Under the pieces are notes generated by a model, which ran no database searches, was not told the DNA's origin, and saw nothing but the letters and a program-made list of their open reading frames with translations. The position numbers were made by a program, and so were the translations under genes. Source: Macrostomum lignano (lineage: Eukaryota). From it: a DNA stretch of 64,000 nucleotides. Below are positions 1-55,700 of the stretch, one piece after another (within the stretch, counting starts at the first letter, position 1; each line of letters opens with the position of its first letter). Where the stretch lies: the NCBI GenBank assembly GCA_002269645.1, contig NIVC01000052.1, positions 310,001-374,000 of the forward strand. Reading direction: 5' to 3'.

Positions 1-3000
1 TCATCCTCCAGTTTCGCGCAGTCTACAACACAAGTGGCGGTGGCTGCAGCAGCCTCGGCGCCCTCCTCGTTCACCTCCAGGCAGGCCTTGTGAACCACCT
101 TGGACACGAACAGGTCCCTGGAAGACTTGCTGATACCGCTGAGGTCAGCGCAGCCCTCCGTGAACAGGCGCTTCACGCCCATGGCTGGCAAGTACTGGGG
201 ATCGCTCAATGTAAACTGCGTTTCCACCTGCAAAGGGAGGAAGGATTGGTTGCAGATGTGAGCTTGGCTTGGACTGGGCCAAATCTGGTTACGATGTGTC
301 GGAATCGGTCATTAACGATCATACCGCTGGGTCATGAAGTAGGCTAAATGCATACTGAACTTTGGGTGAATTGGATTTGATCTATTCAGGGTACATTACA
401 TCAATTTACGATGATAACAGCATTACGGATACTTGCTTATACAAGCTATTTTTTCGGTAAGTTCTGTACACTCACTAGCTAATAAAGGCACTATCAATTG
501 TAGGTAGCTGTTATGTGATCCAATTACATGTATGTTGCGATAAAACCGTGGTTGTAACCATGCACGATGGGAGATGTAACTCGCTTCTTTATGAGTATTG
601 GCATTTTATTTTACGTAGAAACTAGTAAATATTTGTAAGTAAGTATTAAAGCAGTAAAGAGTTCATTAAAACGTCACTATAGAAATTTAGTAAAGTAACT
701 ATACAGCTTGCTGAAAAGCCTTTCACAAGATGTTTTCGTTGCTGCTTCTGCTAATCTTGGCACAGAGCTCAATAGGTTCATCAGTTGAGCAGCTCAATTA
801 CAACTTAGTGCACCATATGAGCATGAACAAGGATCCTGGTGTTGTACAGGTCAGTAAGACTGGAGTAAGACCGTCATTGGCCACAAGGAAAAATCTTATT
901 GCTCTTCTGCCAGACCGAGTCCCGCTGCAACGCCTCAATCGGATGCCACAAAGACCCGGTGACTCTCTCGTGCGGCCTGCTGCAGATCAAAAGCACCGAC
1001 TGGATTGACGCCTCAGACTTGCCGGAAAACCTATTAGAGGAGGTCTGCGTAATTTATGAGTCTATAACATTCCGACCATAAACCCTGACCCTAACCTAAA
1101 TTGTCGGCAGTCAAATGGCTGGTAGTCAAATGCTTGACAGTCACATATCGGGCTCCTGCAGTCTATAGGACTTAAATAATTCATTTTAATATCCATATAC
1201 TTGCTCCGTTCTTATTCCCAAACCAAACCAGACTGGATGACCTGCACTACTGGGTTACAGAGTCTGCTTGTGCTCTGCTATATGGCAAGGTATGGCAAAT
1301 ATTGCTCAGGCGGAAGACAGCCAACCGATGAGTTGAAGAAAATGGCTCTTTGTTCAAGTGTGTTCGACCGACGTTGCGTTTGACCATTTGTGCAAAGCTC
1401 CCTTATGAGTTTAAAGATACATTTAACTACGTGTCCATCGATGAAGAAATGCCGCTTTAACACAACCGCTGAATTCACAGGACTATGCTCGCATTCACAA
1501 TGGCGGTCCACTAGGTAAGACAAGAACACCTCACTAATGTGAACTTCAGTGGTTGTGTTAAAGTGGCATTGCTTCATCGATGGCTACTGGAAGAAGAAAT
1601 GTTTAAGAATTCGTCTGCCTTGTGTGTATATGAACACTTGGCGTCGCAAGTATCAGTTTGATGTGCCCTCTCTACAGTTTAAGATGCACTCTCGGTCTGC
1701 CGATTCAATAGAATCATGCAACTCTCGCCTGCTGCTGCAGCCTGATGATTCTTATTTAAGTTGCTGATTAGTTAGTCTTTACAATTCAAACCCTTAATTT
1801 TCTCATTAGCAAACAAATACAACAAATACTCCTATGTAACGAAAGGCTTCCTTGTTAGAACGAAAGACCTCCGTTCCTTGTCTGCTCCGGCCCTGCCGTT
1901 GTTGACCCTGCAGCTTTAGCCCTCCCCTCGATAGAATTGAGTCTCATCAGCTCAGTCCAGTAAGGTTGAGTTGATCTGAATAAGCATCTTCACTAAATAA
2001 CTGACTATTAACTGATTAGAAGCACGCGTGTGTTGCCTTTGCGTTCGTTCTTTGGGACAGACCAGCCATTTGGAACGGACAGACCTGTGCGTTCGTGCGA
2101 CCCTGGTTGTCGGCCTAACTGCCAGCATGTGTAGTGCGAAATTTTGAACCTCACTAATCATTCAGAGCACGGACAAAGCCGGCTGGTCCATCTCGGGACA
2201 CAATTTCGTTGTATAGGTCATAAAGTCAACCAGAAATACTCACCTTGAATCGAGGCAGGTGTAAGTCAACCTCTCGTGCCATAGCCTGACGCGCCAACTC
2301 CAAGATGTTGTCTAACCGAGCTTCAGACTTTAGAGCCGCGTCCAGCTGGTGCCGCTCCTGCGGCAGGACTATTACCATGCTGCAGCTGTCACCAGCGAAC
2401 AGCAGCTGGACTAGACGCAATCCGCGACCTTCAGTGTAGAGAAAATCGCGTTTGTTCTGCATCATCCGCACGGGAGACTGGCTGCCCGGCACCGACTCGA
2501 ACTGTCCATCGTAGGTGTCATCTCGGTCGAAGGGGTCCATCCAGTCGCCTTTGAAATAGATAGCGTTCACCAGCACAAAGCGAGTGTTGGTATCGAGAGA
2601 ACCTCTGAAAGTGTTACATTGTTAGCTATCTGTCATTAATTGAACCTACTTAAAAAGTTTTAAAAGCAAAAAACGTTAACTTACTGCTTACTACTCAAGT
2701 CAATAACTTGAAAGACGTAATCAAGTTTTTTAAAGCATTTAATAAAAAATCTTTACTGAATACACAGCCGTATTGAGAATATTCTGTGGTTTTGTATACA
2801 GTACGAAGTCGTGTCCTAAAGATTGAAGTAACATGAAGGAGACATTGATTTACCTATTAGCTATTAGCTTAGCTAGCTTAGCTTAGCATTAGCTATTTAC
2901 GGCTACAAGACCAATCTAACTGAGACGTTCTAAATCCAAGAGGTTAAATTTTCTAGCTTAGCTTTACTCACCGTGCGAGCAGCTCCCGGATCTTGCTGCT

Positions 3001-3420
3001 GGTCTGCTGCTCCACCCACTGGTTGATGGCCTCTCTAGCAGCTTCGCACTGCTGCTTGAAGTCCACACTGCCCAGCTCGGCTCCGTAGCTCTTGGCCAGG
3101 GTGCCGCTGAACTCCGCCTCGATGGCGAAGCTTCTCTCCGCGAACAGCCTGTTGGCCACCGCCAGCTTCACGCCCTGACGTCCGCTGTTCAGCGCCGAGA
3201 TCAGCCGGCCCATGTCCGAGTGCGGAGACTTCAGCTGGCTCAGGTGCAGAGCCTGCGACAGCTCCGCCTCGGTCTCGGTCTTGGCTCCGGCCAGGGTCAT
3301 GGCGAGGGCCACCTGCACAGAGGCTGGCGACAGAAACACATTCTCAGACTTGTGCTGCTCGATCACCTGGTTCAGCAGCGACCAGGCGAAGCGGACGGCG
3401 CTCTCGGTTAGGCTGGACAT
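1..3420 (-). CDS. Intracellular serpin (clade-B-like, no signal peptide); 3' end lies beyond the window. Exons 3420-2972, 2604-2244, 227-<1
   Basis: Serpin motifs [75 protein letters not shown]. Junctions CG|GTGAGT..TTTCAG|A (phase 2) and AAG|GTGAGT..TTGCAG|GTG (phase 0) join in frame. Confidence 0.95.
730..1620 (+). pseudogene. i-type lysozyme/destabilase (GH22i)-like gene, probably degenerate or containing assembly indels, nested antisense in serpin intron 2
   Basis: Signal peptide [14 protein letters not shown] (730-). [35 protein letters not shown] (about 905-1010). [22 protein letters not shown] (about 1232-1330). CAG|[12 protein letters not shown]|GTAAG (1481-1514). GYWKKKC (about 1585-1605). 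These match i-type lysozyme blocks in the correct order, but several splice phases/frames do not reconcile. Confidence 0.8.
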
Positions 3421-5859
3421 TCTCGGGATTGCAGTTTCTGCTGAAATGCACCGAGAAAATACAGTCAGTACAGCAGTCTTCGAAAATCGAAATTTCCGAA
3501 AATCACAAATGTACTTTCAACAGTTGCCCTATCCATGGCCATGCACTTTATCATACCCATTGTATGGCATCTCAGTAACAAATAGGCAACTAGCTACTGG
3601 TTCCCTTGTTGGTCCCACTTACATTAAGTTATGAAACCATTATGGAGTATTCCATTTTTTAAACAGCAGATATCCTTTGGGGTATCCCTTAACCAACACC
3701 AAGTCTGTTTTAATCAACACAAAGTTCTAAGAAATTCGTCTATAAGTTCCCTGCACTTGTTGCTACTCGTAAACGACTTTGTTGGTCGTAAATTTTCGGA
3801 AAGCAGTCTTCAGTAAAATTTATTCATCGCTGACTTCATTCGTACACGGAATCATTATCAAGCATAGTTGCATGTCACCAGATGCATGAGTTCAGTTTCT
3901 AGTAGTTCACAAAGCTAATTCACGCTCTTAATGCATTCGATGCGCACTGAATCTTAATGCATGGCGTTACACGTACGCGGCAGCTTTCAATCGAAGCGTT
4001 TTGCTCAGTCGTTGCTTTTTTGGCTTATTAGACATCAAATACTATGACAACAATTGTGCATTGTTCTCACACTCTTGCTCGCCCTGACGCATTTAAAATG
4101 AGGCATTTCGGTTTGGCGTCTGGCACCTTTGCGTGTATCCGCTTTAAGGCTATATACAAAAGTAATTAACTGGAAAGTCGATCTGTTGTTGAGTTCTGCT
4201 GATTTTTTGTTAATGAAGCAATTCGACTTCGAGTAGCAAAATGGCTGCCCCCTTCACTACAGGGATACAGTGTTTGCCCGGCCATATTCCCGATTTCCAA
4301 TGCACGTTGAATCACGCTGATCTGTGAGTGAACACTGACTAGTTTATCGGTTCTCAAATTGTATAATTCGTGTTTCTCAACGCCCAAAATCTGGACTAAC
4401 GTGACTTAGCAAATCATTAAAAGTTTTCTTACGATGCTGTAGCTAAAACCAAGACAAGGCGCCAAGCATGCAAAGGCGCCAAAATGCTAAATAGGTAACA
4501 CACAAATTAGGCACCGAAATGCCTGGTAACCGATGTTTTCGACTCAAACCCTGATGCTGAGTACTTCCGATATACAATCTACCGCAATATTGTTTAGTCA
4601 AGGACTACTCAAGTTGAGTCAAGTATGAATAGTACAAAAGTCTAGGATGCAGGTTTTACCGAAAATACAGTAAAAATACAGGAGAATGAAGGTTTTCAAA
4701 AAATTTGTTATTGCTTTTGATAGAAGGTAGACCCAATGCTCATCTTTTGATATGTTTTGCCTTTTAGTACATGTTGGGTGCCTAAAAATCATTTAAATGG
4801 CACAGCTTCTCATGGGTTTCATGAATATATTTTGTCATTCTTATTTGACTGTGCAATAAAATGTGTAACAGAGCGATAAAATGGATTCTTAAAACCAATG
4901 AGTCAAGCTGTGCCATTCTTTATGAAAATGAAAAGCCGTCCTTCTACTTGAGTGGTCCTTGTGTTTAGTATGCACCACAGATACTAGAATAATATGATAT
5001 TTATTAATTAGTTATTCTAGCCTTTTAATAGCTATACTTAAGAGCTATTAAAGGCTGGAGAGAGCTGGGAAAGAGAAGGCTTTTTATCACTTTGGTTGGC
5101 TTTTGCAGTCTATGGCCCACAGACTTAGGCAAGACGCAGCCAAGGCCCCTCGTCACTTCAGCATTTGATTTCGTCCATTGATACACGAAAGCCATAGAAT
5201 AGGATCGTGTGCCACTAAAAAGGCACACTGCGTTTAATTTCGTCAACATCACGAAGCCATAGCCATAGACCATGAAATGACAAACGCAAACTTGTAAGAG
5301 AGAAACTTGAACAGAGCAGAAAGTCTCCGGTAATTGACGGCAAGCATTCAGCGATGATTTTCATGTTGAGCCATGGATAGTTCCTTAGACGAAATCTAAG
5401 GCAGTTTTTCCCGAAATCCATTTCTTGTCTCTTCATTTATCCCACACTGCTTTGGCTATTTTGTTTTCCCAAAAGCCCTATTTGCAATGAATGAAGCTTG
5501 AAAAAATCAAACGCTGAAGTGACGAATTCAATCGTAAACGGTATAGCATAAAGGTATAGTATAGTTATAGCTTATTTCCTTATGTGCGCTATGACCTTGA
5601 TTTAAATATCGGGCAAAGCACGAGCGCGCGTGTTTTCTGGCAATTGTTTAACAAAGCTACACACTATAGACAAGTGTATTGTATAATATATCGTATTTGC
5701 CCGGCACAGGTGTCATTTTTCCACACTAGAGAGAAAAATAAGAAGGGTCGAAACCGTCTAATAGATGATAAAGTTGGGAAAATAGTCACGTGATATAGTA
5801 CTAGGGAGGAAAAAGCCCGTTGAAAACGATACCGTGACAAGAATTGCCGAATACTTGTT

Positions 5860-7353: not shown

Positions 7354-8853
7354 TTAAAACACTGGCGACTCCTGCCGCTCCAACTGCAGCTTCCTGCCGC
7401 CGTCTGCTACTCCTCGGGCGTCACCTTCGCCGATGTCGCCGCGAGTGGGTTTTGGCGGCCTGGCCAGCAGCTCCACCAGGGCTTCCAGAGCCGCCTGACT
7501 CTCCACGAAGCCGGCATCGGCGGCGCTGGCCAGCTCGGCAGCTAGATGGCCGCAGCGGAGCCGGTCAGCCTGGCGCAGGGCCCGCACCGTGTCGCAGCTG
7601 CCGTCGCTGCCGCCACCAGCAGCTTCAGAAGCAGCTCCCGCTGCAGTGCCGCCGCCGCGCTGCGGGGCCAGGTGGGTCCGGCAGACCGGCAGCACCTCCA
7701 TAGGCAGGCATTCCATAGCGCCGCCGGAGACACCGCCGGAACCCGGATGCAGCTGCAGCGCTGTTGTGTCCGTCACCAGAGCCTGAAGTAGGTAAATGTA
7801 CGCTGCATTGGAACTCATGGCACACTCTCCCGATATACACGGTGCCCAGGCCAAGAAGTGTCCCAGAGTGACTTGCATCGCCCCAGAGTCGTTGCAGATG
7901 ACACAGGTAAAATAGGAAAAGACTCTAAACGACTCTAAAATGACGAGATGTCACGGTACAAGTCGCCAAAAAGTCGTCAAAGACTCGCCCAATAATCACT
8001 TTGAAGTGTTTTATTATCTGCGACTCCAAAATGACTCTGAGGCGATGGTATAACGACTCTGCCGGCCGTAGACTAGTCACTGATTAGTATTTGAAGCACT
8101 CTAACTAGCCTACTGAGTTAGTAGACAGTTAAGCGCCAGCACAACGATTCTTTAGATGACTCTTTTAAGCATGCATTCATAGCCCTGAGTTTCTCATTGT
8201 GCCATTTTTCCGGAATCGAACCCGGGACTTTGGTGCTAGATCAAGTCGAATTAAATTGACAGAACCACTCATTTGCCCTCTTTTTTCCAGTAATATGAAG
8301 CGGTGCCCAGAAGCTGACCACTCAGCCCCAATAGCCAAGAAGAGGGCCCACTCCAGCCCACCTGAGTAGTGGCATCCCTGGCGTGCTGCACCAGCACCAG
8401 CAGCAGGTCGGGCTGTTTAAACTCCTCGCACAGCCGCCTGTGAATGTGCGCCTCCTTGGCTGACAGCTGCACCAGCTGCGGCTGCTGCTCCGGCCGAAGG
8501 CAGTCGCCGATCCGGCGGCGATACCAGCCGATAACGGCGCCGTCGGTGGCTTCGGCGGCGGCCCGAGCGGCGGAAGCGGCGCCGGAGACGGCCAGACGGG
8601 GCAGCGGCGCGAGCGACACGACCCGGTAGCGCCGGCTGGCCGTGGTGGCGGCCTCCGCCTGGTCGGTCCTGACGGTGCGAGACTCCAGCTCGCGGCTGCC
8701 GAGCAGGAGGCCGTCAGGCGGATCGAGCTGGGCGCACAGGGAGGCAAACTGCGGCGAAGGCAGCGAGACGTTGCCGGCAGTCGCCGCCGCAGCGGTCGTC
8801 GATGCGGGGGCGCTGAAGCCGCCATTGGTGAATTCACCGCCTGGGCTGAGCAT
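7354..8853 (-). CDS. ABRAXAS: Abraxas/FAM175-like MPN- domain protein (BRCA1-A/BRISC scaffold family), about 306 aa. Exons 8853-8362, 7782-7354
   Basis: DGLLLG, VIGWYRRR, SAKEAHIHRRL, DLLLVLV parallel the Abraxas MPN- core (EGFLLG, VVGWYKFRR, RERLLHKNL, DLVFLLL), followed by a helical C-terminus. CAG|GTGGG..TTCAG|GCT is a phase-0 join. Confidence 0.65.
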
Positions 8854-8937
8854 GGAGAGTCCGCAGCGACATGAATTAACAAATTGGATTTGCAGTTCAA
8901 GTGAAATATTTTAAACTAAGGCCAGATCTAGTTAGCT

Positions 8938-9232
8938 CATCACGTGATTAAGATGACGGCATCACGTGACTGAACACAATTGCATCACGTGTTAGATAGC
9001 GACATCATGTGACTAAAGAAAATGAAATCATGTACCTAAGAAAGTTACAGCACGTGACTAAAGAAAGTTACATCACGTGACTATAGAAAATGACATCACG
9101 TGACTAAAGTTACGTGGCATCACTTGACTAAAGACAGTGGAATCACGTGATTAAAGACAGTGGAATCACGTGATTAAAGACAGTGGCATCACGTGACTAA
9201 AGAAATGGCGTCACGTGACTAAAGAAAATGAT
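8938..9232. repeat. Degenerate ~22-bp tandem array containing 10 exact CACGTG E-boxes (mostly TCACGTGA)
   Basis: Repeated atcacgtgactaaag units, starting about 90 bp upstream of the Abraxas-like ATG. Confidence 0.85.
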
Positions 9233-9834
9233 ATCAATATGAGAGCGATTATGAAGAACACGAACTCCACTTTAATCAAGACAGTTTAGAGGTGATTAAT
9301 ATAATAGAATATCCAGAACCTTGTGTTGACAACCTCTTACTTAGAGAATCGTCAGGGGGCTCAAAAGTCAGTCTTCTCTTCTTATTAAAATCTAAATTCT
9401 ACACTGAAGTAATTGAGCAAAGATATTTTCAAAAATTCATAAAAATTGAATGAAGATCAACAGAAAAGTTCAAGTATATTAAAGCTCATAAAGTTTAACA
9501 ACAACATAAAATCTGATTTGAAAAAACCAATCAGACTACTCGCGAATGACAGTGAGATGCGCAAAATGGCCTACTGATTGCCAGTAGTATCGAACAAAAT
9601 GAATATTGCTACAGCAAAAAGTCGTGCTGAAAATGCATTGAACGATATATTGTTTAATTCTTGATAGAAATTGATTAAAAATCATCGATGATGACAAAAA
9701 ATTTTATGATTATTGCAACGGCTAAAAACGACAAAAACACGAAAGAGCAACTTTAAGTCCCACAAGTTTTGACTTTCATTTTGTTTTAAATGAAAAAATA
9801 CATGCGATAGTGTAAAATATTCAAATCTAACTGT

Positions 9835-10410
9835 ACATTGTCACCCGCACTAACCTTATCTCGACTCTGTCCCAATGTGCATTGTCTCCCGCGCTAACCT
9901 TATCCGCCGACTCTGTCCCAATGTACATTGTCTCCCGCGCTAACCTTATCCGCCGACTCTGTCCCAATGTACATTGTCTCCCGCGCTAACCTTATCCGCC
10001 GACTCTGTCCCAATGTACATTGTCTCCCGCGCTAACCTTATCCACCGACTCTGTCCCAATGTACATTGTCTCCCGCGCTAACCTTATCCGCCGACTCTGT
10101 CCCAATGTGCATTGTCTCTTGCGCTAACCTTATCCGCCGACTCTGTCCCAATGTACATTGTCTCCCGCGCTAACCTTATCTCGATTCTATCCTAACTCCT
10201 AATGTACATTGTCTCCCGCGCTAACCTTATCCGCCGACTCTGTCCCAATGTACATTGTCTCCCGCGCTAACCTTATCCGCCGACTCTGTCCCAATGTGCA
10301 TTGTCTCCCGCGCTAACCTTATCCGCCGACTCTGTCCCAATGTACATTGTCTCCCGCGCTAACCTTATCTCGATTCTATCCTAACTCCTAATGTGCATTG
10401 TCTCCCGCAC
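9835..10410. repeat. 46-bp minisatellite, about 12 copies
   Basis: Unit tgtacattgtctcccgcgctaaccttatccgccgactctgtcccaa; period checked at 9921 and 9967. Confidence 0.95.
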
Positions 10411-10642
10411 TAATATTTCCCCGTAAAAACGCCTGAAAATCAAAAGAAATGTAAGGACACGAAGAGTCCGATCTCGAATGCCCTCGAATAACCTAAATCG
10501 AGCTATTTTGTTCCTGATCCATTGCTGAAATTCTGAAACAGCTACTGAAAGTAGAAAAAAAGAACTTTTTTTTACAAAACAGACAACCGGAACCGGATTA
10601 ACTACTAGCGGTTAGTCGCATCTGATTATAACAATTTTTTTA

Positions 10643-11533
10643 TCAGAACTCGCCGCGTCTGATCGGGCCAGCAGCCATGTCGGCGCAGTGGGCGGGCGCG
10701 CCCGGATCGGTCGGGTCGTAGGCCAGACAGGCGGACCAGAGCGCCGCAGGCAGCAGCGCCAGCAACGACAGGGCGGCGAGGAGAGCCAGCATGCCGGCTG
10801 GGCCGCAGGCGGAGCCGAAGCGAGCCAGGCAGAGCTGAGCAGCCAGCCAGACTGACACAAGCAGCAGGCCGGCCGCTTCTCGGCCCTCCTCGTGCGCCAG
10901 AGGATTTCTAGCTAACAACGACTGCTGATGTTGGTTGCCATGGAGACTGGTTGGTAGCAGGGCCGACTGGAGCAGGTAAGCGAGGCCCGACAGGCAGATG
11001 GCAGAGTGAGCCAGCATTAGCCAGCGGGTTGCGTTGTTGGCTGTTAATAAAATAAGGGAATAAAATACGGGTTAAAATGTCTGCATTAGCCTACTAGCAG
11101 TAGAAATGCAAGAAAAATAACAGTTTTCAGGAGTCTGACTCACTTAAAAGCGAAGGCTTCAAGGCAAGTGCCAGCGCCAGCAGACAGGGTAACGCGTAGA
11201 TGGGCTGAAGTGCGGGATATTAAAAACAATAAATACGCTATAGCTGCCTACTATTAGTAGTCTGATGCCAACAATTACTCAATTTTTTGCTGACAAACTC
11301 ACAATCCAAACCGCTGGGTCGGGATCGTTGGTCTGCACAGCGGCGCACATGAAAAACAGGCAGCTGGCCAGCAGGTTGGCGCAGCGCCAAATCCAGAACC
11401 GACCGCCCGCGCTTCCCAGCGGCTGAGAGGGTACATCATGCCCTTGCTGCTGCTGCGGCTGGCTTGAGTGCATACTGATGAGGCGAGAGTCTGGCGCTCC
11501 AGATGATGATGATGATGAATGTCGCCTTATCAT
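10643..11533 (-). CDS. TMEM220: TMEM220-like membrane protein, about 229 aa. Exons 11533-11303, 11204-11144, 11040-10643 (start Met uncertain)
   Basis: WRCANLLASCLFFMCAAVQTNDPDPAVWI, HEEGREAAGLLLVSVW and the terminal PAHC match TMEM220 (VQVNDPD, HEEEGRELSGL, PTHC). GT-AG junctions are in phase (0, 1). Confidence 0.9.
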
Positions 11534-11626
11534 TTTTACGCATGAATTTCATCAAGTTTTGTTTGTTTGTCCGACTTGAATATGAGAGCCATTTGCAAGA
11601 GGCGAGGGCGATCGTAGAAGGGGAAT

Positions 11627-12412
11627 TAGGGGAATTCTAGAAAGGGATAGTAGGAAATTCTAGAAGGGAATTAGGGGAATTCTAGAAGGGGATAAGGGGA
11701 AATTCTAGAAGGGGATTAGGGGAAATTCTAGAAGGGGATTAGGGGAATTTTAGAAGAGGATAACCGGCGATTCTAGAAGGAAATAAGGGGCGATTCTAGA
11801 AGGAGATAAGGGGCGATTCTAGAAGGGGATAAGGAGCGATTTTAGAAGGCGATAAAGGGTGATTTTAGAAGGGGATAAAGGGCGATTCTAGAAGGGATAG
11901 GGGGAAATTCTAAAAGGGGATAAGGGAAAACTCTAGAAGGGGATAAGGGGCGATTCTAGAAGGGGATTCGGGGAATTCTAGAAGAGGATTAGGGGAATTC
12001 TAGAAAGGGATAAGGGGAATTCTAGAATGGGATTAGGGGAATTCTAGAAAGGGATAAGGGGAATTCTAGAAAGGGATAAGGGGAAATTCTAGAAGGGGAT
12101 TAAGGGAATTCTAGAAAGGGATAAGGGGAATTCTAAAAGGGGATTAGGGGAATTCTAGAAGAGGATAAGGGGAATTTTAGAATGGGATTAGGGGAAATTC
12201 TAGAAGGGGATTAAGGGAATTCTAGAAAGGGATAAGGGGAATTCTAGAAGGGGATTAGGGGAATTCTAGAAGAGGATAAGGGGAATTTTAGAATGGGATT
12301 AGGGGAATTCTAGAAAGGGATAAGGGGAAATTCCTAGAATAAAGGGAGATTCTAGAAGGGGATAACGGGCGATTCTAGAAGGGGATCACGGGCGATTCTA
12401 GAAGGGGATAAA
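11627..12412. repeat. ~21-23-bp purine-rich minisatellite
   Basis: Unit like ttctagaaggggattaggggaa, with TCTAGA and GAATTC cores. Confidence 0.95.
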
Positions 12413-12768
12413 GGACTGATTGCTAAGCTTGGATACTGGAAAAGGCTCTAGATTCCAGAAGTAAATTTTGATCAGAGCTGAACATGCGTTGTAAACCAAG
12501 GCAAGCAAAATCATGCAAATCGGCTATGTATTTTTATATGTAGAAATATTTGCAGTACTTAGCAGTACCAAAAACTGAGTAACACAATTTTATAACAACT
12601 TGGCGATTCACACGATTGTTAAACGCGAGCCAAGGCTAAGCTTGACGCCGAAATGCGGAAACCGGAGAAAGAAAAAAAGAACAACAGAAGAAAAAATGCA
12701 CTGTAATTAACCGGTATGAACAGATATTGGGAACAGGCTACTAAAACTAGACAGACATGTGAGACCCA

Positions 12769-15700
12769 TCAGCCAGACAGACCATCATCCCAGTCGGCTA
12801 AAAACTCGTCATCTTGAGCAGCCAGTCCAGCCTCCTGCTGCCGGCCTCCCCGCCGTTCTTGAGCTTTCCTAGCCCGGACCCGACGTCGCAGAGCATCGAC
12901 GTCGGCATGAGTGACGCAGCGGAAGCGAATCGCCGTGGCCGTCTCCTGCCGGATGTCGAAAGCCAGCAGGAACAGGCCGGCCATGTTGGCCAGCTGCTGC
13001 TGCATCTCCAGCAGAGCCGCTTGGCAGCGGGCCAGAGTGCCCGAGTCTCCGGAACGGCGGGCGGCATCGGCCTCGGCCGCTGTGAAGCCCAGCAGATCTG
13101 CGGGGATGGAGCCAGCTAGGAGTTTTGAGAGGCTGAGCGCGACTCGAATCCCGGTCACAATTCATCAATATTGAGCACATTCTGAAAGCCACAAATTGAT
13201 AATCAGGGCACCACACCTAGGATTTATGATCCCACACCTATGAATCATGATCCCACACCTATGAATCATGATCCCACACCTATGAATCATGATCCCACAC
13301 CTAGGAATCATGATCCCAAACCTAGGAATCATGATCCCACATCTATGAATAATGATCCCACACCTAGGAATCATGATCCCACATCTATGAATCATGATCC
13401 CACACCTATGAATCATGATCCCACACCTATGAATCATGATCCCACACCTATGAATCATGATCCCACACCTATGAATCACGATCCCACACCTGAATCATGA
13501 GCCCACACCCATGAATCATGATCCCACACCTAGGAATCTTGATCTAGGAAGCAGCTACTTATATCGCATTAAAAAGTAATTTCAAATCTCTTTACTACCT
13601 GTAAGCACTCGGTCCCCCAGATTGCAGCTGATAGTGCAGGTGGCATCAGCCAGCAGACAGGGCAGGCTGTAGCCGCCGTCTCGAATCTCCAGGCGACCGC
13701 GCAGACCCATCAAGTAGCCGCGCACAGTGAACTCTCTCACCTGGGGACCGGACTCCTCCAGCCAGGTGTAAACGTCTTTCAGGTAAACGAATGGCTCTTT
13801 GCTAGTGGGGATGCCTGCGATGTCCCGGCCTTCTGGTTGGGCTGGTGAAGGAGACAGATTGACGCGAATTAATATAGAATGAAAGCTTTTAAAATACTCT
13901 GTCCCAAACAGACGATAGCCCATTAGATACCTCCCTCAGTCACTCACTCATTCATTTAACAGAATGAATAATTCATTCTATCACTCACTAATTCTTTCTA
14001 TCACCCGCTCATTCATTCTATCCACACCTATGAATATTAATTCTATCATTCAATCATTAATTCTATCATTCACTCATTCATTCTATTACTCACTCATTCA
14101 TTCTATCATTCACTCATTCATTCTATTACTCACTCATTCATTCTATCATTCACTCATTCATTCTATTACTCACTCATTCATTCTATTACTCACTCATTCA
14201 TTCTATTACTCACTCATTCATTCTATCATTCACTCATTCATTCTATCATTCACTCATTCATTCTATCACTCACTCATTCATTCTATCATTCACTCATTCA
14301 TTCTATCATTCACTCATTCATTCTATCATTCACTCATTCATTCTATTACTCACTCATTCATTCTATCATTCACTCATTCATTCTATCATTCACTCATTCA
14401 TTCTATTACTCACTCATTCATTCTATCATTCACTCATTCATTCTATTACTCACTCATTCATTCTATCATTCACTCATTCATTCTATCATTCACTCATTCA
14501 TTTTATTACTCACTCATTCATTCTATCACCCATTTGTTCTATCACTCACTCATTCATTTCATCACTCACTCTAACTCTATCGCTCACTCATTCCATCAGT
14601 CACTCTTATCACTCACTCACTCATTCAGTCAGGTATTCACTCACTTACTATCTCATTCATTCACACATTTCTTCATACACCGGCCCCTCATTCATTCATT
14701 CATTCATTCTCTCACTACCTTATTCACGCACTCACTCACTCACTCATTCACTCAGTGACAATGAATCACGAACACAGTCTCACCCGCACGCCGCTCCAGC
14801 TCCATCCTAGGCCGCTTAGTACTTGTAGAGGGGAACAGCGGCTGCCGGTCAGCGGAGGCAGACGTTGCAGCCCGGTTGGCTGACGAGGCGGCCGCCGAAG
14901 GAGCAACAGCGGCGGCTTCCAGCTCATCGCAGTCGATGCCTTCGATAGCCTCGGCGAAGAGCAGATCGTCGGCATCGAGGACTTCTTGGACTGACATCTG
15001 GCGAGGTGGCTGAGGCTGCTGCTGTTGATAGCTTTGCTGCCGTTGGAGACTCGTTCCGCTTGATGACGGATTCATGCCTGATGCAGTTTGCCTGCGTTTT
15101 TTAGGATAGAGGCTGCGCAATCAGATACATGCTATTTGGGATTTGGGACTAATTGATGGATGGGGATCTTTTTAGTGTTGATGGATTGGGGATTTTTCTA
15201 GTGTTGATGGATTGGGGATTTTTCTAGTGTTGATGGATTGGGGATTTTTCTAGTGTTGATGGATTGGGGATTTTTCTAGTGTTGATGGATTGGGGATTTT
15301 TCTAGTGTTGATGGATTGGGGATTTTTCTAGTGTTGATGGATTGGGGATTTTTCTAGTGTTGATGGATTGGGGATTTTTCTAGAGTTGATAGATTGCGGA
15401 TTTTTCTAGTGTTGATGGATTGGGGATTTTTTTAGAGTTGATAGATTGGGGATTTTTCTAGTGTTGATGGATTAGATGGATTAGAGATTTATTTAGTGAT
15501 TATAGACGTGGATTTTTGTAGTGTTGATGGATTGGGGATTTTTCTAGTGTCAATGGACAAGACAGTTAGTTACCTGGAAGACTGCTGCTGAAGCCGCTGC
15601 CGAGGCTGAGCACGCTGCACCTGAGCACTATTCTCAGCAGCATCTTCATCGTCCTCAAAGGGATCGAATCCGCCCAGCAGGTCGCGCACATTGTTTCCAC

Positions 15701-18160
15701 CAGCCAGTAGGGAATTTCCTCGGTTAGTTGCTAAGGTGTCCGGATAAGGGCGCGACCGGATGTTGCTGGCGCCGCGGTTATTCGCTGCCGAACTGGAAGC
15801 AGGTGGGATATATTGGTTCCGGTTGGTTGCCATGGAATCCGGCTGGTTCCGGTTGGTTGACATGGAATTCGGCTGGTTCCGGTAGGTTGCCATGCTATCC
15901 GGCTGGTTCCGGTTGGTTGCCATGGCATCCGGCTGGTTCCGGTAGGTTGCCATGGAATTCGGCTGGTTCCGGTAGGTTGCCATGCCATCCGGCTGGTTCC
16001 GGTTGGTTGCCATGGCATCCGGCTGGTTCCGGTAGGTTGCCATGGCATCTGGCTGGTTCTGTTGCTGATGCTGCTGATTCCCAACGGTCGCTGGGCGGTT
16101 ATTTCCGGTGTCCAAGTCGGCAAACAGGCGGTTTGCTGCATCGGCTGCTGCTGCTGCTGGCTGGCGCGGGCCTGCCTGAGAATTTGGAATATGCGGCTTG
16201 GTGCAGGAGTTCGCGGTACACTACTAACTATAGTAGGCTAGTTTGAAAATAAAAGTAAGATATTAAGTAAAATTAGTAAACTATCAGCCACTCAGAAAAT
16301 CAAAACTCTATTCCAACCCCTACCTGCTCCAAATCCGTGGGTTCGAATCCCAGCCGACGCAATGCCGCTAATAGCAGACTCTCCTGGCTTCGCTCGACAA
16401 CCAACTCGTCAACTTGGCCGCCCAGCACTTCAACAGACTGCGGCGAGGTCAGCATCGCGATGCCCCGCCTGACCAGCAGCGGCGGCAGCAGTCGCAGCTT
16501 ACAGCCGGCCGGCAAACCAACGCTGAGCTGCGGCATCGGGCGGCACTCAACAGCCCGCAGCTGGGAGCAGCCGTCTGTCAGGGTCAGCAGCAGCATGCGG
16601 CCGCCTTTCGGCTCGTCCCAGTTGCCGCCTGCGCCGCGGTCGCCGCCGCCGCCGCCACCTCCGAAGTTTCCTCCGTTTGTCTCGTTTGATGTAACCTGAG
16701 GGAGATTAGGTTAGCGAATTCTAATCTCTTTGGATTCTTGGAATTTTGTTTAGTGAACTCTAAGAGTAACAATTGGTCATAGACTACCGAAGCTAATTGT
16801 GTAGAATTCGGTCATAGACTATTGTATCTGGCTGTGTAAAATTGCGGTCATAGACTACTGAAGCTAATTGTGTAGAATTCGGTCATAGACTACTGTATCT
16901 GGCTGTGTAAAATTGCGGTCATAGACTACTGTATCTGGCTGTGTAAAATTGCGGTCATAGACTACTGTATCTGGCTGTGTAAAATTGCGGTCATAGACTA
17001 CTGAAGCTGGTTGTGTAGAATTGCGGTCATAGACTACTGTATCTGGCTGTGTAAAATTGCGGTCATAGACTACTGAAGCTGGTTGTGTAGAATTGCGGTC
17101 ATAGACTACTGTATCTGGCTGTGTAAAATTGCGGTCATAGACTACTGTATCTGGCTGTGTAAAATTGCGGTCATAGACTACTGTATCTGGCTGTGTAAAA
17201 TTGCGGTCATAGACTACTGTATCTGGCTGTGTAAAATTGCGGTCATAGACTACTGAAGCTGGTTGTGTAGAATTGCGGTCATAGACTACTGTATCTGGCT
17301 GTGTAAAATTGCGGTCATAGACTACTGAAGCTGGTTGTGTAGAATTGCGGTCATAGACTACTGTATCTGGCTGTGTAAAATTGCGGTCATAGACTACTGT
17401 ATCTGGCTGTGTAAAATTGCGGTCATAGACTACTGTATCTGGCTGAGTAAAATTGCGGTCATAAGACTACTGTAGCTGGTTTGTGTAGAATTCCGGTCAT
17501 AGACTACTGTATCTGGCTGTGTAAAATTGCGGTCATAGACTACTGAAGCTGGTTGTGTAGAATTGCGGTCATAGACTACTGTAGCTGCTTGTGTAGAATT
17601 GCGGTCATAGACTACTGTAGCTGGTTGTGTAGAATTGCGGTCATAGACTACTGTAGCTGCTTGTGTAGAATTGCGGTCATAGACTACTGTAGCTGGTTGT
17701 GTAGGATTCGGTCATAAACTACTGTAGCTGGTTGTGTAGAATTGCGGTCATAGGCTAAATTGGGTTTGTAGACCTTTACCATATATATTGACTAATTGGT
17801 GTAGAACTCGGCCACAACAACTCAAGTAACAGCTCACCTCCAAATTAGCATTCTCATCGCCCCTGCATTTCCGGTACTGACTGTACAGAGACTGGCTGAC
17901 ATCAATCACTGACTCCAGCTGCAGCACCAGCTTCCCAGTCAGTTGCAGTTTCTCTTCACTAGCAACTTGAGCTGGCAGGGAGGGGTTCTCAAACTCGCGC
18001 AAATCCGAGTGCAGGTATTGCTCATAGAGCAGGCTGCGCAGCTCATTGGGTGCAAATTCCTCAGGCTGGCGGCCGTGCTCCTGACAGAGCCAGTCCTGAC
18101 CAGCCTCCAGCCAGCCCTGTGGCACCGCCAGGGCCTGAGCTCTGAACCAATCTGACAGAG
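12769..18160 (-). CDS. RMI1: RMI1 (RecQ-mediated genome instability 1), 5'-incomplete. Exons 18160-17838, 16695-16324, 16175-15574, 15112-14784, 13841(or 13832)-13599, 13097-12769
   Basis: VPQGWLEA..LYEQYLHSDLRE..LQLESVIDVSQSLYSQ and RMLLLTLTDG..LPAGCKL..VEVLGGQVDEL match the RMI1 N-terminal/OB1 region. EPFVYL..LADAT..VLTDLLGFT match RMI1_C. All junctions are GT-AG and in phase. Confidence 0.93.
13222..13533. repeat. 21-bp intronic minisatellite (RMI1 last intron)
   Basis: Unit atgaatcatgatcccacacct. Confidence 0.95.
13938..14755. repeat. 20-bp / ATTC-type intronic minisatellite
   Basis: Unit ttctatcattcactcattca. Confidence 0.95.
15140..15550. repeat. 26-bp intronic minisatellite
   Basis: Unit gtgttgatggattggggatttttcta. 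Confidence 0.95.
15812..16060 (-). repeat. Coding 30-bp minisatellite within an RMI1 exon, about 8 copies of NQPD(A/S/G)MAT(Y/N)R
   Basis: The RMI1 frame stays open through the array and there is no phase-compatible intron around it. Confidence 0.8.
16775..17752. repeat. 36-bp intronic minisatellite with two interspersed unit variants
   Basis: cggtcatagactactgtatctggctgtgtaaaattg and cggtcatagactactgaagctggttgtgtagaattg. Confidence 0.95.
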
Positions 18161-22175: not shown

Positions 22176-24235
22176 CTTACTTACTACTGACGGGGGGCGC
22201 AGGCGCCGCGAATAGGCCGCGAGGCCCCTATCGCAACCCCAAGGTAAAAGAGCACAAGGATTAGCCTTGGGGGTGCGCCCAGTCCCCGCCAGTAGTCGGC
22301 AGGTCCGCAGTGGAGGCATCGGCGACCCTCATCCGGCCGGAGTCCCGGACGAAGGCGCGGAGGTCTCGGATATTGTCCGCGGTGGTCAGCTCGTCCATCC
22401 GCTGGGGGTGGCCGAGGTATTTGTGCCGCGCCTTGTTGAAGTAAGGGCAGAAGGTGACGTGATGCTCCGCGGTCTCCTCTCCTATGCCACAGAAGGGACA
22501 GGTGGGAGGGCAACCGGTTTGCAACGATATATGTCTCTGGAAGAATCCGTGGCCGGTTAGGACCATGCACATCTCCCTGAGGTCGGTTCTGTTAAGCGAA
22601 ATCAGATAATCAGAGACTTTCCTGTTCAGGTTAGGCATGGCAGAGCGGCTCTGCCTGTACTCGGTGCAGCTGTTCCAGTGGAGCTGGTGCTGCTGATGGA
22701 GCCACCTGTTGATATGGCGGGTGACTTGCGACCTGGGGGTGGGTAGCCTCATCAGACGGTGGTTGCCGTCTGGGTTGCTGCCCTCCTTGGCGAGAGAGTC
22801 CGCGAGCTCGTTGCCCAGGATGTTGCTGTGACCAGGTGTCCAGATAATTCTAATCCTGTTAAGGACTGAGAGAGATTGCACACTGCGGTGGCATTGAGAT
22901 ACTGTAGCAGCGGAGATATTCTCAGTGGTTAAGGCCTTAATAGCAGCTTGGCTATCAGTGTAGAAATTAATGTCAAAATTATTAATGTTCGCCTGAAACA
23001 GTTGCTGGGCACACTGCTCGATGGCGCAAATTTCAGCATGGAAAACTGAGGTGTTCTCACCGAGGTGCAGACTTTCCTGGAGAAGCATCTTACCCTCGTG
23101 GAAAATGGCAATACCCGCTCCAGCGCGGCCGTTGAACAGCGAGCCGTCGGTGAAGCAGTGAATGCCCTGGCTGCGCCGGTTCACACCGACATCCAGCGGA
23201 ATGTTGTCTCGGCCAGGGATGGCGGTCTTGAAGCCCCTCCTGATGTTGAGGGCGGGAGGTCGACTATCCACATTGCCCAGGTCCATGTGGATGTTGTTAA
23301 GGTCGCGGCGGACAAAGTCCATATGCGGGATTAATGTTTTCATTGGCATAAAGCCAGAGGGCGCGTTATTTAACGTTTTATCTCTGATAAGCCGGGAGGC
23401 AGACTTCATAGCCTCCGCCCTAATAAATAGGTGAAGCGGAGGTAGGTTAAGGATAGTGTTCAGCCCCTCGTAAGGGGTGGACGGGTACGCACCTGTGATG
23501 GCACGGCAAATGCTGCCCTGAAGCTGGTACAGCCGCTGACGGGCGGCCTTCTGCTCCAGCACGCTAGTCCAGATGAGACTCGCGTATGTGATACTGGGCC
23601 GGATGATGCCGGTATAAATCCAACGGACCGTTCTAGGCGAGAGGCCCCAAGTCGGCCCGATGGCTCTGCGCAGCTGGGCAAAGCAGCGTTTTGCCCGACC
23701 GATGACGTTATCAAGGTGCTTCGTCCAGCGCAGGTCATGCGTTAGCGTCACACCGAGGTATTTGACCTCCTTCTTGAAGGGGATGTTTCTGCCATAGACA
23801 GTGAGGTTTTTCATCTCCCACTTACGGCGCTTGGTGAAAACGACAGCGACAGTCTTAGTGACGCTGATTTTTAGGCCATGCTGTGTAGCCCAGTCGGCCG
23901 CCTTGTCGGCGAATTGCTGCATCAGGTTGCGCAGAGTGGCGGGGTCGGGTCCGCTGACGACCGCGGCAACGTCATCGGCGTAGCCCGCCCTGGTGATACT
24001 GCTGGGAATGTCAGCGGTTAGAAGTTCGTCCATGACGAGATTCCAGAGAAGTGGAGTTAGCACGCCACCTTGCGGGCCGCCTTTCATCACCGCCCGGGTG
24101 AGGGTAACGCCCATAAGTGTGGATGTCACAAACCTTTTGCGGATCATAAAATAAATCCAGCGAACAATGCTGTGTCTTACATTCCTGCGGGAAAGAGAAT
24201 TTCTGAAGGAGATTCAATAAGGATTGTATTGCATG
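22176..24235 (-). mobile_element. 5'-truncated non-LTR retrotransposon (LOA/I-group-like) with 3' UTR and short TAAG-type tail
   Basis: ORF below, a GC-rich 3' UTR, and a tail GTAGTAAGTAAG on the minus strand abutting the left TIR. Confidence 0.85.
22261..24147 (-). CDS. LINE ORF2 fragment: RT C-terminal half, RNase H and CCHC zinc knuckle (at least 628 aa, no stops)
   Basis: [31 protein letters not shown]; RNase H FTDGS..E(I)CAI..YTDSQA..WTPGH..GNELAD; CPFC..EHHVTFC. Confidence 0.95.
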
Positions 24236-31621: not shown

Positions 31622-49080
<17,459 letters not shown>

Positions 49081-52752: not shown

Positions 52753-55700
52753 CTAGTGGGGATGGCTGGAGACGGACAGGTAGGTGTGGGCGCCGCGATT
52801 CTCGGGAGTGCCGCCAGGTACAAAGGAGCCCGGCGGCCGGACCACGCCCACATTGTAGTTTGGCGGGAACTGCGGCTGCTGCTGCGGCTGAGGAGAGAAG
52901 AACTGCTGCTGTTGCTGCTGTCTGCTTCGTGGACCCCGCTGCTGCTGCTGCTGAGGCACCGCGTAGCCAACAGCTGCCGGGGCAACAGCGGCATGATGCT
53001 GCGGCATGGGGACAGCGAGCGAGTGCAGCTGCGGATGGAACTGCTGGTGCTGCGGCTGGTAGAACTGAATGGCAGCGGAGGCGGCCTGGTGGGCCTGGGG
53101 AGCGGCATAGTAGGCCTGGTGAGGGTCCGGCAGTGCCGCTGGAGCGGCGGCGGCGGCTCCGTAGGGCCAGGCGGCCGGGGGAGCCATGGCTATCATTGGA
53201 CCGGCTGCGTACTGGGCGGCCACGGCGGCCATCGCCGATGGGTTGTGCGGCTGCGGCTGCAGAGGCGCGGCCGGCTGCTGCTGCTGCTGCGGTGGCTGCG
53301 GCTGAGGAATCTGGGCCGGGCCGGACACCTGAACCTGCGGCTGCTGGGGCATGGGAGCCGGCACGTACTGAGGCTGCGGCGGCGGCGGAGGAGGCTGGTG
53401 GGCCTGATGATGATGGTGGTGATGTGGAGGCGGCGGCGGCGGCGGCGGCGGCATCGGGTGCTGGTGATGCTGGGCAAAGTGGCCGTGAGGAGGATGATGA
53501 GGCGGCCCGTGATGCTGCACTGGCATCATCTGTTGGTACCTAGCCATACGTCGCTCCTCCTTTCTCTGCTTGGCCCGCTCGGACACTGGCCGGGCCATAC
53601 TGACTGACAGCTGACTTCCAGCCAATTCCGTCCCGTTCATGGCCTCCACCGCGCGGACCGCCGCGTCCCGATTGGCGAAGTGCACGAAGGCGTACTCGGA
53701 CTGCACCAGGCGGACTCGCTCTGGCTGGCCGCAGTCTGCGCCAGCGAAGGCCTCGGCCAGCTGCTGCTCAGTGACTGACGGCGAGATGCCGCGAACGTAG
53801 ACGGCGCGGACGGTCTCTAGCGCGGCCGGGTCCGGCTCCTCCAGCGGGTCGGCCCAGTCCACCCAAACGTCGGCGGCGGCCGGCCAGACGCGGGGCTGGC
53901 GCTGCAGACGGCGCCTGGCTGCGCTGGCCGCGCTGTGCTTCTTGAATTCAACGAAGCAGAAGCCGCGATTCTTGCGCGGTACGCCGGGGACGCCGCCGCC
54001 GCCGTTGGGGCCGGTCGGCGCGGTCACGATGACGTCAACAACGCCGTCGAGGTGGCTCTGGAAGTCGGCTAGCAGCTCCTCGCGGCTCTTCGTCTTTGGC
54101 ACGTTGCCGACAAACAGGCGCAGATTGGGGTTGGTGATGTTCACCTGGGAGAGGCGGGGTAAACGGCGGGAGTAACTATGCAATTCCAAACAATAGTAAG
54201 TAGGCCGTCAGCTTATCAGCAATGAGCAAGGTAATTGATTGTTTACCATATCTGAATGGAACTGAGTTAAGCGCACTAACCAAGTCTGACGTTGGTTCGA
54301 GTCGCAACTGTTGACAAACTTTGCATTTTGTGCTTCCACCTCAATACCTGATTTTATTTAAGCACTGTACTTTTTAATATAGGAATTGGGATAAGATAGA
54401 GTAATATTACAAGAACAAGACAATACATTCCTCACATGTACAGCTGCCAATCTTGGCTAACTGAATTCGAACTAAAGAGCAAAAAATCATCTAATCTCTA
54501 TCCCTCTCTCATAGGGGGCCGTAGCCCAGCGGTAGCGCAGCTGCTCTGGTGTGCCAGCGACCCAGGCTCGATTCCAAGTGCAGTCACATTAATTTGGGGC
54601 TGAATTGGAATCTCGGCTTGGCTCTGCTCGTGCAATTAACGGCCTTGAGAGCCAACCCCCCAAGGCGCAGTGAAGTGTACATGCCTAACGATAAAATAAA
54701 GTTAGGGCCGCTGTACACTCCTGTGTGAGTGTGTGCCTGCGTACGTATCCGCGCGCTTGTATGCCTGCTCAGGGGAGTCGGCGGAATGGGCAGTAATGCC
54801 TCTCGCCGGTTGTGTGCCTATGTCGCTTAAAGTGCGCCAGGGTGCACACAACCCCCCTGCCTCTAAAAAAAAATCCCTCTCTCATTGTATCTCTACCCTC
54901 TCTCACTGTATCTCTACCCTCTCTCACTGTATCTCTACCCGCTCTCACTGTATCTCTACCCTCTCTCGATGTATCTCTACCCTCTCTCGCTGTATCTCTA
55001 CCCTCTCTCGCTGTATCTCTACTCCTCTCTCACTGTATCTCTACCCTCTCTCACTGTATCTCTACCCGCTCTCACTGTATCTCTACCCTCTCTCGATGTA
55101 TCTCTACCCTCTCTCGCTGTATCTCTACCCTCTCTCGCTGTATCTCTACTCCTCTCTCGCTGTATCTCTACTCCTCTCTCACTGTATCTCTACCCTCTCT
55201 CGCTGTATCTCTACCCTCTCTCGCTGTATCTCTACCCTCTCTCGCTGTATCTCTACCCTCTCTCGCTGTATCTCTCTCCTCCTCTCAACCGACCTGCAGG
55301 TGCCGCCGCGTAGCAGCCTCGTAGCCATTGAACTTCTCCACAGCCGCGGCAGCGTCCTCTTTGTCGGCGTAGCACACGAAGCCGAAGCCGCGGCCGCAGC
55401 CGGTGTTCGGGTCCACCATGACGCGAACATCGCACACGTTGCCAACACTGGAAAACAACTCGTACAGCTGGTCCTCATACATGCCTCTGGGCAGGTGACC
55501 GACAAACACTTCCCGGCCGGTGGGGTCCAGCGCCGCCTGCGGAGAGTAGCAAGCAAATGGGAAGACAGGCCTCAGCTAGGAGGTCCCAGGCTGGAATCCA
55601 GGCAGGGCCACATTTCAACTAACAGCAATAAGTGGTGGCTATTTTAGTCCGTTCCGCACGTGGCCATCACCACCACATTCACTTGAGGCTTGCAGCACGA

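Follow-up and report, generated by a model that had tools for sequence, protein, structure and literature searches.

A clade-B-like serpin without a signal peptide in Macrostomum lignano, with two adjacent candidate reactive bonds after Asp339 and Cys340

At the left edge of a 64-kb stretch of the genome of the flatworm Macrostomum lignano (hereafter, the window; assembly GCA_002269645.1, contig NIVC01000052.1) lies most of a serpin gene, hereafter gene A, whose reactive-centre loop (RCL) carries the motif Cys-Val-Val-Asp-Cys-Ala. We put at about three in four the probability that A is an intact, maintained serpin without a signal peptide and that its reactive site is one of two adjacent bonds, Asp339/Cys340 or Cys340/Ala341 (slashes mark scissile bonds). 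The sequence Asp-Cys-Ala can be read in two ways, as a caspase site with the cut after Asp or as a site for a proteinase-3-like enzyme with the cut after Cys, and the second of these cuts would fall at the standard serpin position. All position numbers refer to the window, which was placed by exact look-up; window coordinate c corresponds to coordinate 13433-c of L001, the locus on this contig that is cited below.

A serpin gene that overruns the window edge

Gene A is encoded on the minus strand and overruns the left edge of the window. Its three exons (Table 1), separated by GT-AG introns, join in frame to a partial serpin of 345 amino acids, and exon 1 is 100% identical to protein P0001 by tblastn. 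Beyond the edge, exon 3 extends uninterrupted for 103 nt to a stop codon (L001 13433-13535). The public contig supplies the 34 residues absent from the window, which end in ...DSVTFNVNEPFLVLILDRSTGCVLFAGRITQPSE, and the full protein has 379 amino acids counted from Met1, with its C-terminus six residues past the FAGRI motif. A first-pass annotation of the window had read a serpin loop peptide at positions 1-90 and had proposed that the 3' end be recovered from adjacent sequence. The peptide proved exact, encoded by the minus-strand exon 3 that follows a TTTGCAG acceptor, and the end has now been recovered. Positions 89..3 (minus strand) are the last 29 complete codons of A in the window and hold the hinge and the RCL.

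Gene A is a real serpin and no chance match, its window product hitting the Pfam family PF00079 with an E-value of 1.6e-96 (324 bits, cut-off 27, with positions 3-330 of the 370-position profile covered). It retains 47 of the 47 columns that are invariant in an alignment of 46 sequences. The AlphaFold2 model, built on 46 relatives, had a predicted local distance difference test score (pLDDT) of 89.6 and a predicted template modelling score (pTM) of 0.88. The pLDDT was below 50 only in the RCL between s5A and s1C (residues 330-348 in P0001 numbering), a disordered stretch within which the candidate reactive centre Cys336-Ala341 falls. When the model was searched with Foldseek, human SERPINB1 was the best match (4ga7, template modelling (TM) scores of 0.89/0.93, 37% identity), followed by SCCA1 (2zv6, second), ovalbumin-type serpins and MENT, and the TM scores to native serpin structures were 0.82-0.93. 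The phmmer search of the PDB returned horse and human leukocyte elastase inhibitor at an E-value of about 1e-70, and the SERPINB9 structure 8zcr was also a strong sequence match (E-value of 1e-57). The best sequence matches were vertebrate SERPINB1 and coral serpins, with identities of 39-44%. By homology, A is of the ov-serpin type, extended at neither terminus, and we file it as clade-B-like, not as clade B proper.

The hinge of A meets the inhibitory consensus, with Glu at P17, Gly at P15, a small uncharged residue at P14, an Ala-rich P12-P9 stretch and no blocking Pro or charge, and is by these residues of the inhibitory type.

At the N-terminus, the alignments start at residue 2-3 of A, opposite residue 4 of horse leukocyte elastase inhibitor and residue 12 of tagged SERPINB1. 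No hydrophobic h-region was detected in the N-terminus of A, the highest nine-residue Kyte-Doolittle mean among the first 20 windows being 1.33. In each of the three homeologous copies of A (see below), a putative CAG acceptor precedes the ATG by 17 nt, and in the transcript of an orthologue of the neighbouring paralogue, gene B, from another species, an in-frame stop is found two codons ahead of the ATG. Because the N-terminus aligns with those of signal-less clade B serpins and holds no h-region, and because the acceptor and the stop in the B transcript precede the ATG, the absence of a signal peptide, as stated in the first-pass annotation, is supported. A cytosolic location of A is what we infer, and it stays at that strength since some flatworm serpins without a signal peptide are released anyway (PMC7437470).

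Two registers for the reactive centre

Counted from Glu324 at P17, Asp339 (positions 21-23, minus strand) is the 16th residue and Cys340 (positions 18-20, minus strand) is the 17th, and the candidate scissile bonds are Asp339/Cys340 in a 16-residue register and Cys340/Ala341 in the canonical 17-residue register. The Asp is the 14th residue after the Glu-Glu pair, with 13 residues in between, one fewer than the first-pass annotation had counted. Its likening of the Asp placement to that of CrmA agrees with the literature, in which the distance from P17 to P1 is almost always 17 residues and is 16 in crmA, C1 inhibitor and alpha2-antiplasmin (PMC4493575, a secondary statement), and its remark that the usual count of 17 would make P1 a Cys is matched by the alignments. 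In both HMMER alignments of A and SERPINB1, ...ATATCVVDC lies on ...ATAGIATFC, with Cys340 on the P1 residue Cys344 and Asp339 on Phe343.

SERPINB1 has two P1 residues and acts on chymotrypsin-like enzymes through Phe343 and on elastase-like ones through Cys344 (PMC11327461). Cleavage after Asp339 is mechanistically feasible because crmA uses the 16-residue register and SERPINB1 uses its 16th residue, Phe343. The 16-residue register would thus be legitimate for A, with a precedent in the closest scaffold; the 17-residue register would be equally legitimate, and the Asp would then stand at P2. The sequence by itself cannot separate the two bonds.

The peptide Abz-VADCADQ is cut between Cys and Ala, and the canonical-register motif of A, Val-Val-Asp-Cys/Ala, closely resembles VADCADQ. 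This peptide is the routine substrate of proteinase 3 (PMC9432755), which prefers Asp at P2 via its Lys99 and small hydrophobic residues at P1 and P4 (PMC6149181). SERPINB1 is a cytoplasmic inhibitor of proteinase 3, elastase and cathepsin G (PMC11327461, PMC13612166). Since proteinase 3 prefers Asp at P2, by analogy an Asp at this position should be no obstacle to an elastase-family target of A.

We propose that A would work by the ordinary suicide-substrate trap of serpins, in which a protease would cleave the exposed loop, the hinge would then insert into sheet A, and the acyl-enzyme would be dragged away and distorted. Two adjacent scissile bonds would be available, as in SERPINB1. The main reactive bond would be Cys340/Ala341 (P4-P1' Val-Val-Asp-Cys/Ala), with Asp339/Cys340 as a feasible second site at which an Asp-specific cysteine protease, that is, a caspase, could be trapped. 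With Cys340/Ala341 as the canonical bond, A may be a cytoprotective inhibitor of an elastase- or proteinase-3-like S1 serine protease with an Asp-accepting S2 pocket, and we give this somewhat less than even odds. Inhibition through Cys at P1 and through Asp at P1 are not mutually exclusive, and both are possible in one protein, as in SERPINB1.

It is possible, if tentative, that Asp339 is instead the physiological P1 in the 16-residue register, which would make A an endogenous cross-class caspase inhibitor of a flatworm, cleaved at Cys-Val-Val-Asp/Cys. Most caspases prefer Glu at P3, and the loop of A is without it. The canonical register puts the Asp at P2, the P1 column of SERPINB1 falls on Cys340, as does that of SERPINB9 (judged from the match in residue numbering only, query 4-337 on chain 4-337), and a proteinase-3-like target explains Val-Val-Asp-Cys/Ala at least as well. 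Beside the register precedents of crmA (PMC4493575) and of SERPINB1 at Phe343 (PMC11327461), several points favour Asp339 as P1. Val at P3 and Asp at P1 match CrmA, and a non-polar P4, Cys included, is deemed acceptable (PMC8007001). A is predicted to be of the cytoplasmic type, and the cytoplasm is where caspases act. Precedents also exist in the pairs PI-9 and caspase-1 (PMC2213432) and NbSPN14 and BmICE (PMC11741654).

A tandem paralogue with a different loop

A second, complete serpin gene, B (PAA92408.1, Mlig027000g2), follows A in tandem and in the same orientation after 1.1 kb and so lies beyond the left edge of the window (L001 14645-16244). Its loop is hydrophobic and SERPINB1-like, with Cys16-Phe17 (..AIACF-SMPMMMP.., AVAIACFSMPMMMPFF). 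The loop of A has been remodelled into an acidic one, and B has kept the hydrophobic one.

The two genes are almost identical in exon 1, with a synonymous divergence (dS) of 0.048, whereas dS is 1.09 in exon 2, where the ratio of non-synonymous to synonymous divergence (dN/dS) is 0.19, and 1.17 in the segment from the hinge to the end. By these values, A and B are old duplicates (dS of about 1.1) in which exon 1 was homogenised and the loops diverged. The homogenisation probably came about through gene conversion limited to the 5' part. Between A and B, dN/dS was 0.14-0.19 in the scaffold and 0.65 across the loop.

The sole cross-species orthologue in our data, P0002, comes from another species (Logan runs SRR28338164/5) and is of the B type, with a dS of 0.66 to B in exon 2 and a loop that has hardly changed (dN of 0.029 in exon 3). 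By these values, the duplication of A and B is older than the species split and the target of the B loop is conserved.

The genome is polyploid, and the homeologous loci L002 and L003 hold the same pair of A and B. The three A homeologs are intact and have identical RCLs, and differ at 4-7 synonymous and 3-4 non-synonymous codons. Because the homeologs are intact, their RCLs are identical and dN/dS is low outside the loop, A is, by these comparisons, a maintained and functional gene under purifying selection.

The first-pass annotation had raised the possibility of alternative RCL exon cassettes. A tblastn search with A and B, run on the window and on the next 10 kb downstream, detected no alternative RCL exon; the window held the three A exons only, and the downstream region held the complete gene B only, so that a tandem paralogue is found in place of cassettes. 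The hinge, RCL and stop codon of A share one exon with the 53 residues that precede the hinge.

The public model P0123, with the body of A and the loop of B, was rejected as an isoform, since A and B are both complete at L003 and the model switches from one gene to the other within hinge stretches of identical sequence. P0125-P0127 (724-782 amino acids) were likewise set aside as fused or frame-shifted A/B models. Such chimeric and fused models (P0123 and P0125-P0127; L003 8001-14333) could be mistaken for RCL isoforms, and with either bond as the reactive site the public annotation of the locus needs correction, both for these models and for the entries labelled "hypothetical". A literature search for Mlig027000, Mlig023593 and Mlig013530 returned nothing, and the single find for Macrostomum serpins was a paper on Fasciola, in which one MlSrp1 appears in a supplementary figure.

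Rarity of the acidic loop and other readings

We profiled the loop positions in two sets of serpins. Among the loops of the closest relatives (n = 128), position 16 was mostly Phe, Leu, Met, Tyr or Cys, with Asp only in the M. lignano A copies, and Cys was the commonest residue at position 17 (65 of 128), in favour of the canonical register. In a diverse sample of 169 RCLs, taken from representatives of clusters at 50% identity, position 16 was Asp in three and Glu in one, and position 17 was Glu in four and Cys in ten. An Asp at position 16 is thus rare and derived, in favour of a P1 role for Asp339. The searched library contained more than 43,000 serpin homologues, and with Asp16 at ~2% and Cys17 at ~6%, dozens of Asp16-Cys17 loops are expected from composition alone, which counts against Asp339 as P1. 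In the serpin P0139, with Asp16-Arg17, the Asp is evidently at P2, a parallel for the canonical register in A.

The triplet Asp-Cys-Ala recurs in two unrelated serpins of the intracellular type, which again favours Asp339 as P1. P0275, a metagenomic fragment (L006 1-333), has Asp16-Cys17-Ala18 in the same register as A (..MVMMD-CAMPM..). P0065 (L007 2452-3609; L008 1564-2721) has neither introns nor a signal peptide and shares ~70% identity with coral serpins, and in its loop (..VIAVLD-CARM..) the Asp is at the canonical P1. Judged by sequence alone, P0065 makes a more clear-cut case than gene A of the flatworm for an endogenous serpin with Asp at P1. It is doubtful that A forms with P0065 and P0275 a recurrent, independently evolved class of signal-less Asp-Cys-Ala serpins and traps caspases at Asp339/Cys340.

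Further along the loop of A, Leu-Glu-Asp-Asp/Ser (residues 343-347) fits the initiator-type caspase motif, (I/L/V)-E-x-D, better than Cys-Val-Val-Asp/Cys does. Because the canonical bond is six residues before this site, an enzyme that cut here would inactivate the serpin without being trapped. The loop could accordingly be imagined as a substrate, decoy or regulatory site, at which for example a caspase cut switches the serpin off, and the P' side of the A loop, two residues longer than those of SERPINB1 and B, and the change from Pro218 to Leu in the window copy are in line with this. The conserved textbook inhibitory hinge and the purifying selection on the scaffold make it very unlikely. 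SERPINB1 and SCCA1, the top Foldseek matches, are inhibitory; the non-inhibitory ovalbumin and OVAX are also among the top matches.

Flatworms depend heavily on gut cathepsins and legumains, the latter of which cut after Asn or Asp, and papain-like enzymes select chiefly an aliphatic P2. The aliphatic Val-Val of the A loop (Val337/Val338) could be such a P2 determinant in an inhibitor of lysosomal cysteine proteases leaked into the cytosol, either cathepsins L, B or K, as for SCCA1 (SERPINB3) and SRP-6, or legumain. We consider this unlikely, as the loop has no feature specific for this class, Asp339, Glu344, Asp345 and Asp346 are disfavoured by the S2/S1 sites of papain-like enzymes, and we know of no serpin inhibitor of legumain. 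It gains some weight from SCCA1 (2zv6) being the second-best structural match and from established cross-class inhibition, by SCCA1 of cathepsins K, L and S and by C. elegans SRP-6 of cathepsins and calpain (PMC7863939). Other readings of A share the remaining weight.

Several points weigh against A as a functional serpin with Cys340/Ala341 as its main bond. The P1 of A is assigned by counting and homology only, the M. lignano target, a proteinase-3-like enzyme with a basic S2 pocket, is putative only, and that A is transcribed is judged from the form that its gene models take. Acidic residues are rare at positions 16 and 17 (~2% each in the diverse sample), so Asp339 would be derived and specificity-changing and could equally be P1. 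No A-type orthologue was found in another species with the full-length query, in the 50%-cluster library or with a 79-aa C-terminal query. At codon 218 (given as window 2767-2769, minus strand), the A copy in the window encodes Leu (CTG), whereas Pro218 (CCG) is found in its two homeologs, in B and in at least 90% of the relatives, within the conserved strand motif LELPY/LPF. The window copy may thus be slightly impaired, with Leu218 as a mildly deleterious allele.

Gene structure and the rest of the window

The features of gene A in the window are listed in Table 1. The leader is probably a trans-splice or 5' untranslated region acceptor region. Its sequence, TTTCAGCAG followed by AAACTGCAATCCCGAGA and the ATG, is the same in all three homeologous A loci, and the public gene models of A begin with (T)AIPRM, immediately past the putative leader acceptor.

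Table 1 Features of serpin gene A in the 64-kb window (positions as window coordinates).
Feature	Position	Strand	Remarks
5' leader, CAG acceptor to ATG	3421..3437	-	putative acceptor at 3438-3440
Exon 1, Met1 to first two bases of codon 150	2972..3420	-	ATG at 3420; GTGAGT donor after 2972
Exon 2, residues 150-270, including NAIYFKGDW and strand s2C LPRFK	2244..2604	-	acceptor TTTCAG, donor GTGAGT
Exon 3, part in the window, residues 271-345	1..227	-	acceptor TTTGCAG
Hinge P17-P9 EEGAEAAAA, Glu324-Ala332	42..68	-	from translation; columns (nearly) invariant across the alignment of 46 relatives
Candidate reactive centre C-V-V-D-C-A, Cys336-Ala341	15..32	-	counted from Glu324 at P17
Start of acidic P' stretch L-E-D-D(-S), residues 343-346	1..11	-	window edge splits the second Asp

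A plus-strand open reading frame (ORF) of 92 amino acids with a signal-peptide-like start was seen inside intron 2 of A (730-1008). It is probably spurious and was rejected as a gene, as its start falls in a stretch that L003 lacks in the alignment, and identity over the whole intron is 93-97%.

Three genes were called upstream of A on the same strand, at window positions of about 7354-13432 (L001 1-6079): an RMI1 homologue, of which the end is included, a member of the TMEM220 family and a gene for a 302-aa product without a Pfam match. A TMEM220-family gene is also found upstream of the homeologous serpin pair at L003, and a 299-aa gene without a Pfam match upstream of that at L002.

Minisatellite and microsatellite arrays crowd the window from 8938 to 55275 (periods of 12-46 bp, 43 Tandem Repeats Finder rows at a score of at least 200). 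Examples are (AGAC)n at 34800-36289, (AGAT)n at 46818-48800, a 36-mer in 27 copies at 16775-17757 and a 21-mer in 35 copies at 41083-41816. They explain the unusual AT-skew and the GC blocks that the composition profile shows. On the minus strand, a 628-aa ORF with RVT_1 and RNase H domains (22261-24147) is a retroelement pol fragment, and a 478-aa ORF with two RRM_1 motifs in a block of 60% GC (52753-54189) is a probable RNA-binding protein gene.

Implications and comparison with known serpins

Endogenous caspase inhibitors are few, namely the inhibitor of apoptosis proteins (IAPs), PI-9 weakly and SERPINB1 non-covalently, and the classic serpin ones are weapons of viruses and parasites. The action of serpins on caspases is already known; an endogenous case in a free-living invertebrate would be new. 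If Asp339 is P1, the CrmA solution would have arisen more than once, and A would offer a handle on the restraint of cell death in the stem-cell-rich tissue of a regenerating, genetically tractable flatworm. If the Asp-Cys-Ala class is real, cells would long have held caspases in check with serpins, and poxviruses would have arrived at the same strategy by convergence. If the canonical bond is the one used, the locus would hold a SERPINB1-like tandem pair with split specificity, in which B has the hydrophobic loop and A the one with Asp at P2, as in ordinary serpin evolution.

SERPINB1 is the best sequence and structural match to A and resembles it in lacking a signal peptide, in the hinge and in the Cys of the P1 column. 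It differs in overall sequence (37-44% identity) and in having Phe where A has Asp at position 16, and on the P' side A has an acidic stretch with two extra residues. Nor is the flatworm pair orthologous to vertebrate SERPINB1, A and B being closest to each other. SERPINB1 restrains inflammatory caspases non-covalently via a CARD-binding motif (PMC13612166).

The viral serpin models share the fold of A at an identity of at most 26%, compared with 34-37% for human clade B structures, and CrmA is absent among the best 60 PDB sequence matches, both for the whole of A and for its C-terminal 74 residues. Because the viral serpins are far more distant than human clade B, the likeness between the loops of A and CrmA is, as judged from these identities, convergent. 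Of the first-pass annotation, which had left convergence with or relationship to viral serpins as alternatives, the former thus stands, together with its serpin of intracellular type and feasible 16-residue register, and the viral kinship does not. In CrmA, according to that annotation, Cys-Ala follows the Asp. Like A, CrmA (poxviral SPI-2) and myxoma Serp2, which are cross-class inhibitors of caspases and granzyme B, are of the intracellular type and have Asp 16 residues from P17, and the P4-P1 residues of CrmA, Leu-Val-Ala-Asp (PMC8007001), share Val at P3 and Asp at P1 with A in the 16-residue register. Unlike in CrmA, the canonical 17th residue of A is a plausible P1 in its own right.

SERPINB9 (PI-9), a cytoplasmic clade B serpin with an acidic P1 followed by Cys, resembles A, which is predicted to be cytoplasmic and has Asp-Cys in its loop. 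Its acidic residue, Glu340, occupies the canonical position 17, one place beyond that of the Asp in A (position 16), and to our knowledge flatworms have no granzyme B. PI-9 inhibits granzyme B and, weakly, caspase-1 (PMC2213432).

In parasites, NbSPN14 of Nosema bombycis (P1 Asp348) was shown experimentally to act on the silkworm caspase BmICE (PMC11741654), and Mc-S3/4/5 of Myxobolus cerebralis, with Asp at P1, are predicted caspase inhibitors (PMC8007001). Caspases of the host or of the parasite are the presumed targets of these parasite proteins. NbSPN14 has a signal peptide and is secreted, and the Nosema serpins group with those of poxviruses, whereas A belongs to the own gene set of an animal that is free-living.

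Serpins with RCL cassettes include Manduca serpin-1, Drosophila Spn42Da and Anopheles SRPN10. Like these, the A/B locus combines a near-identical N-terminal part, encoded by exon 1, with different reactive loops. Unlike these, its diversity comes from two complete tandem genes in which exon 1 has probably been converted.

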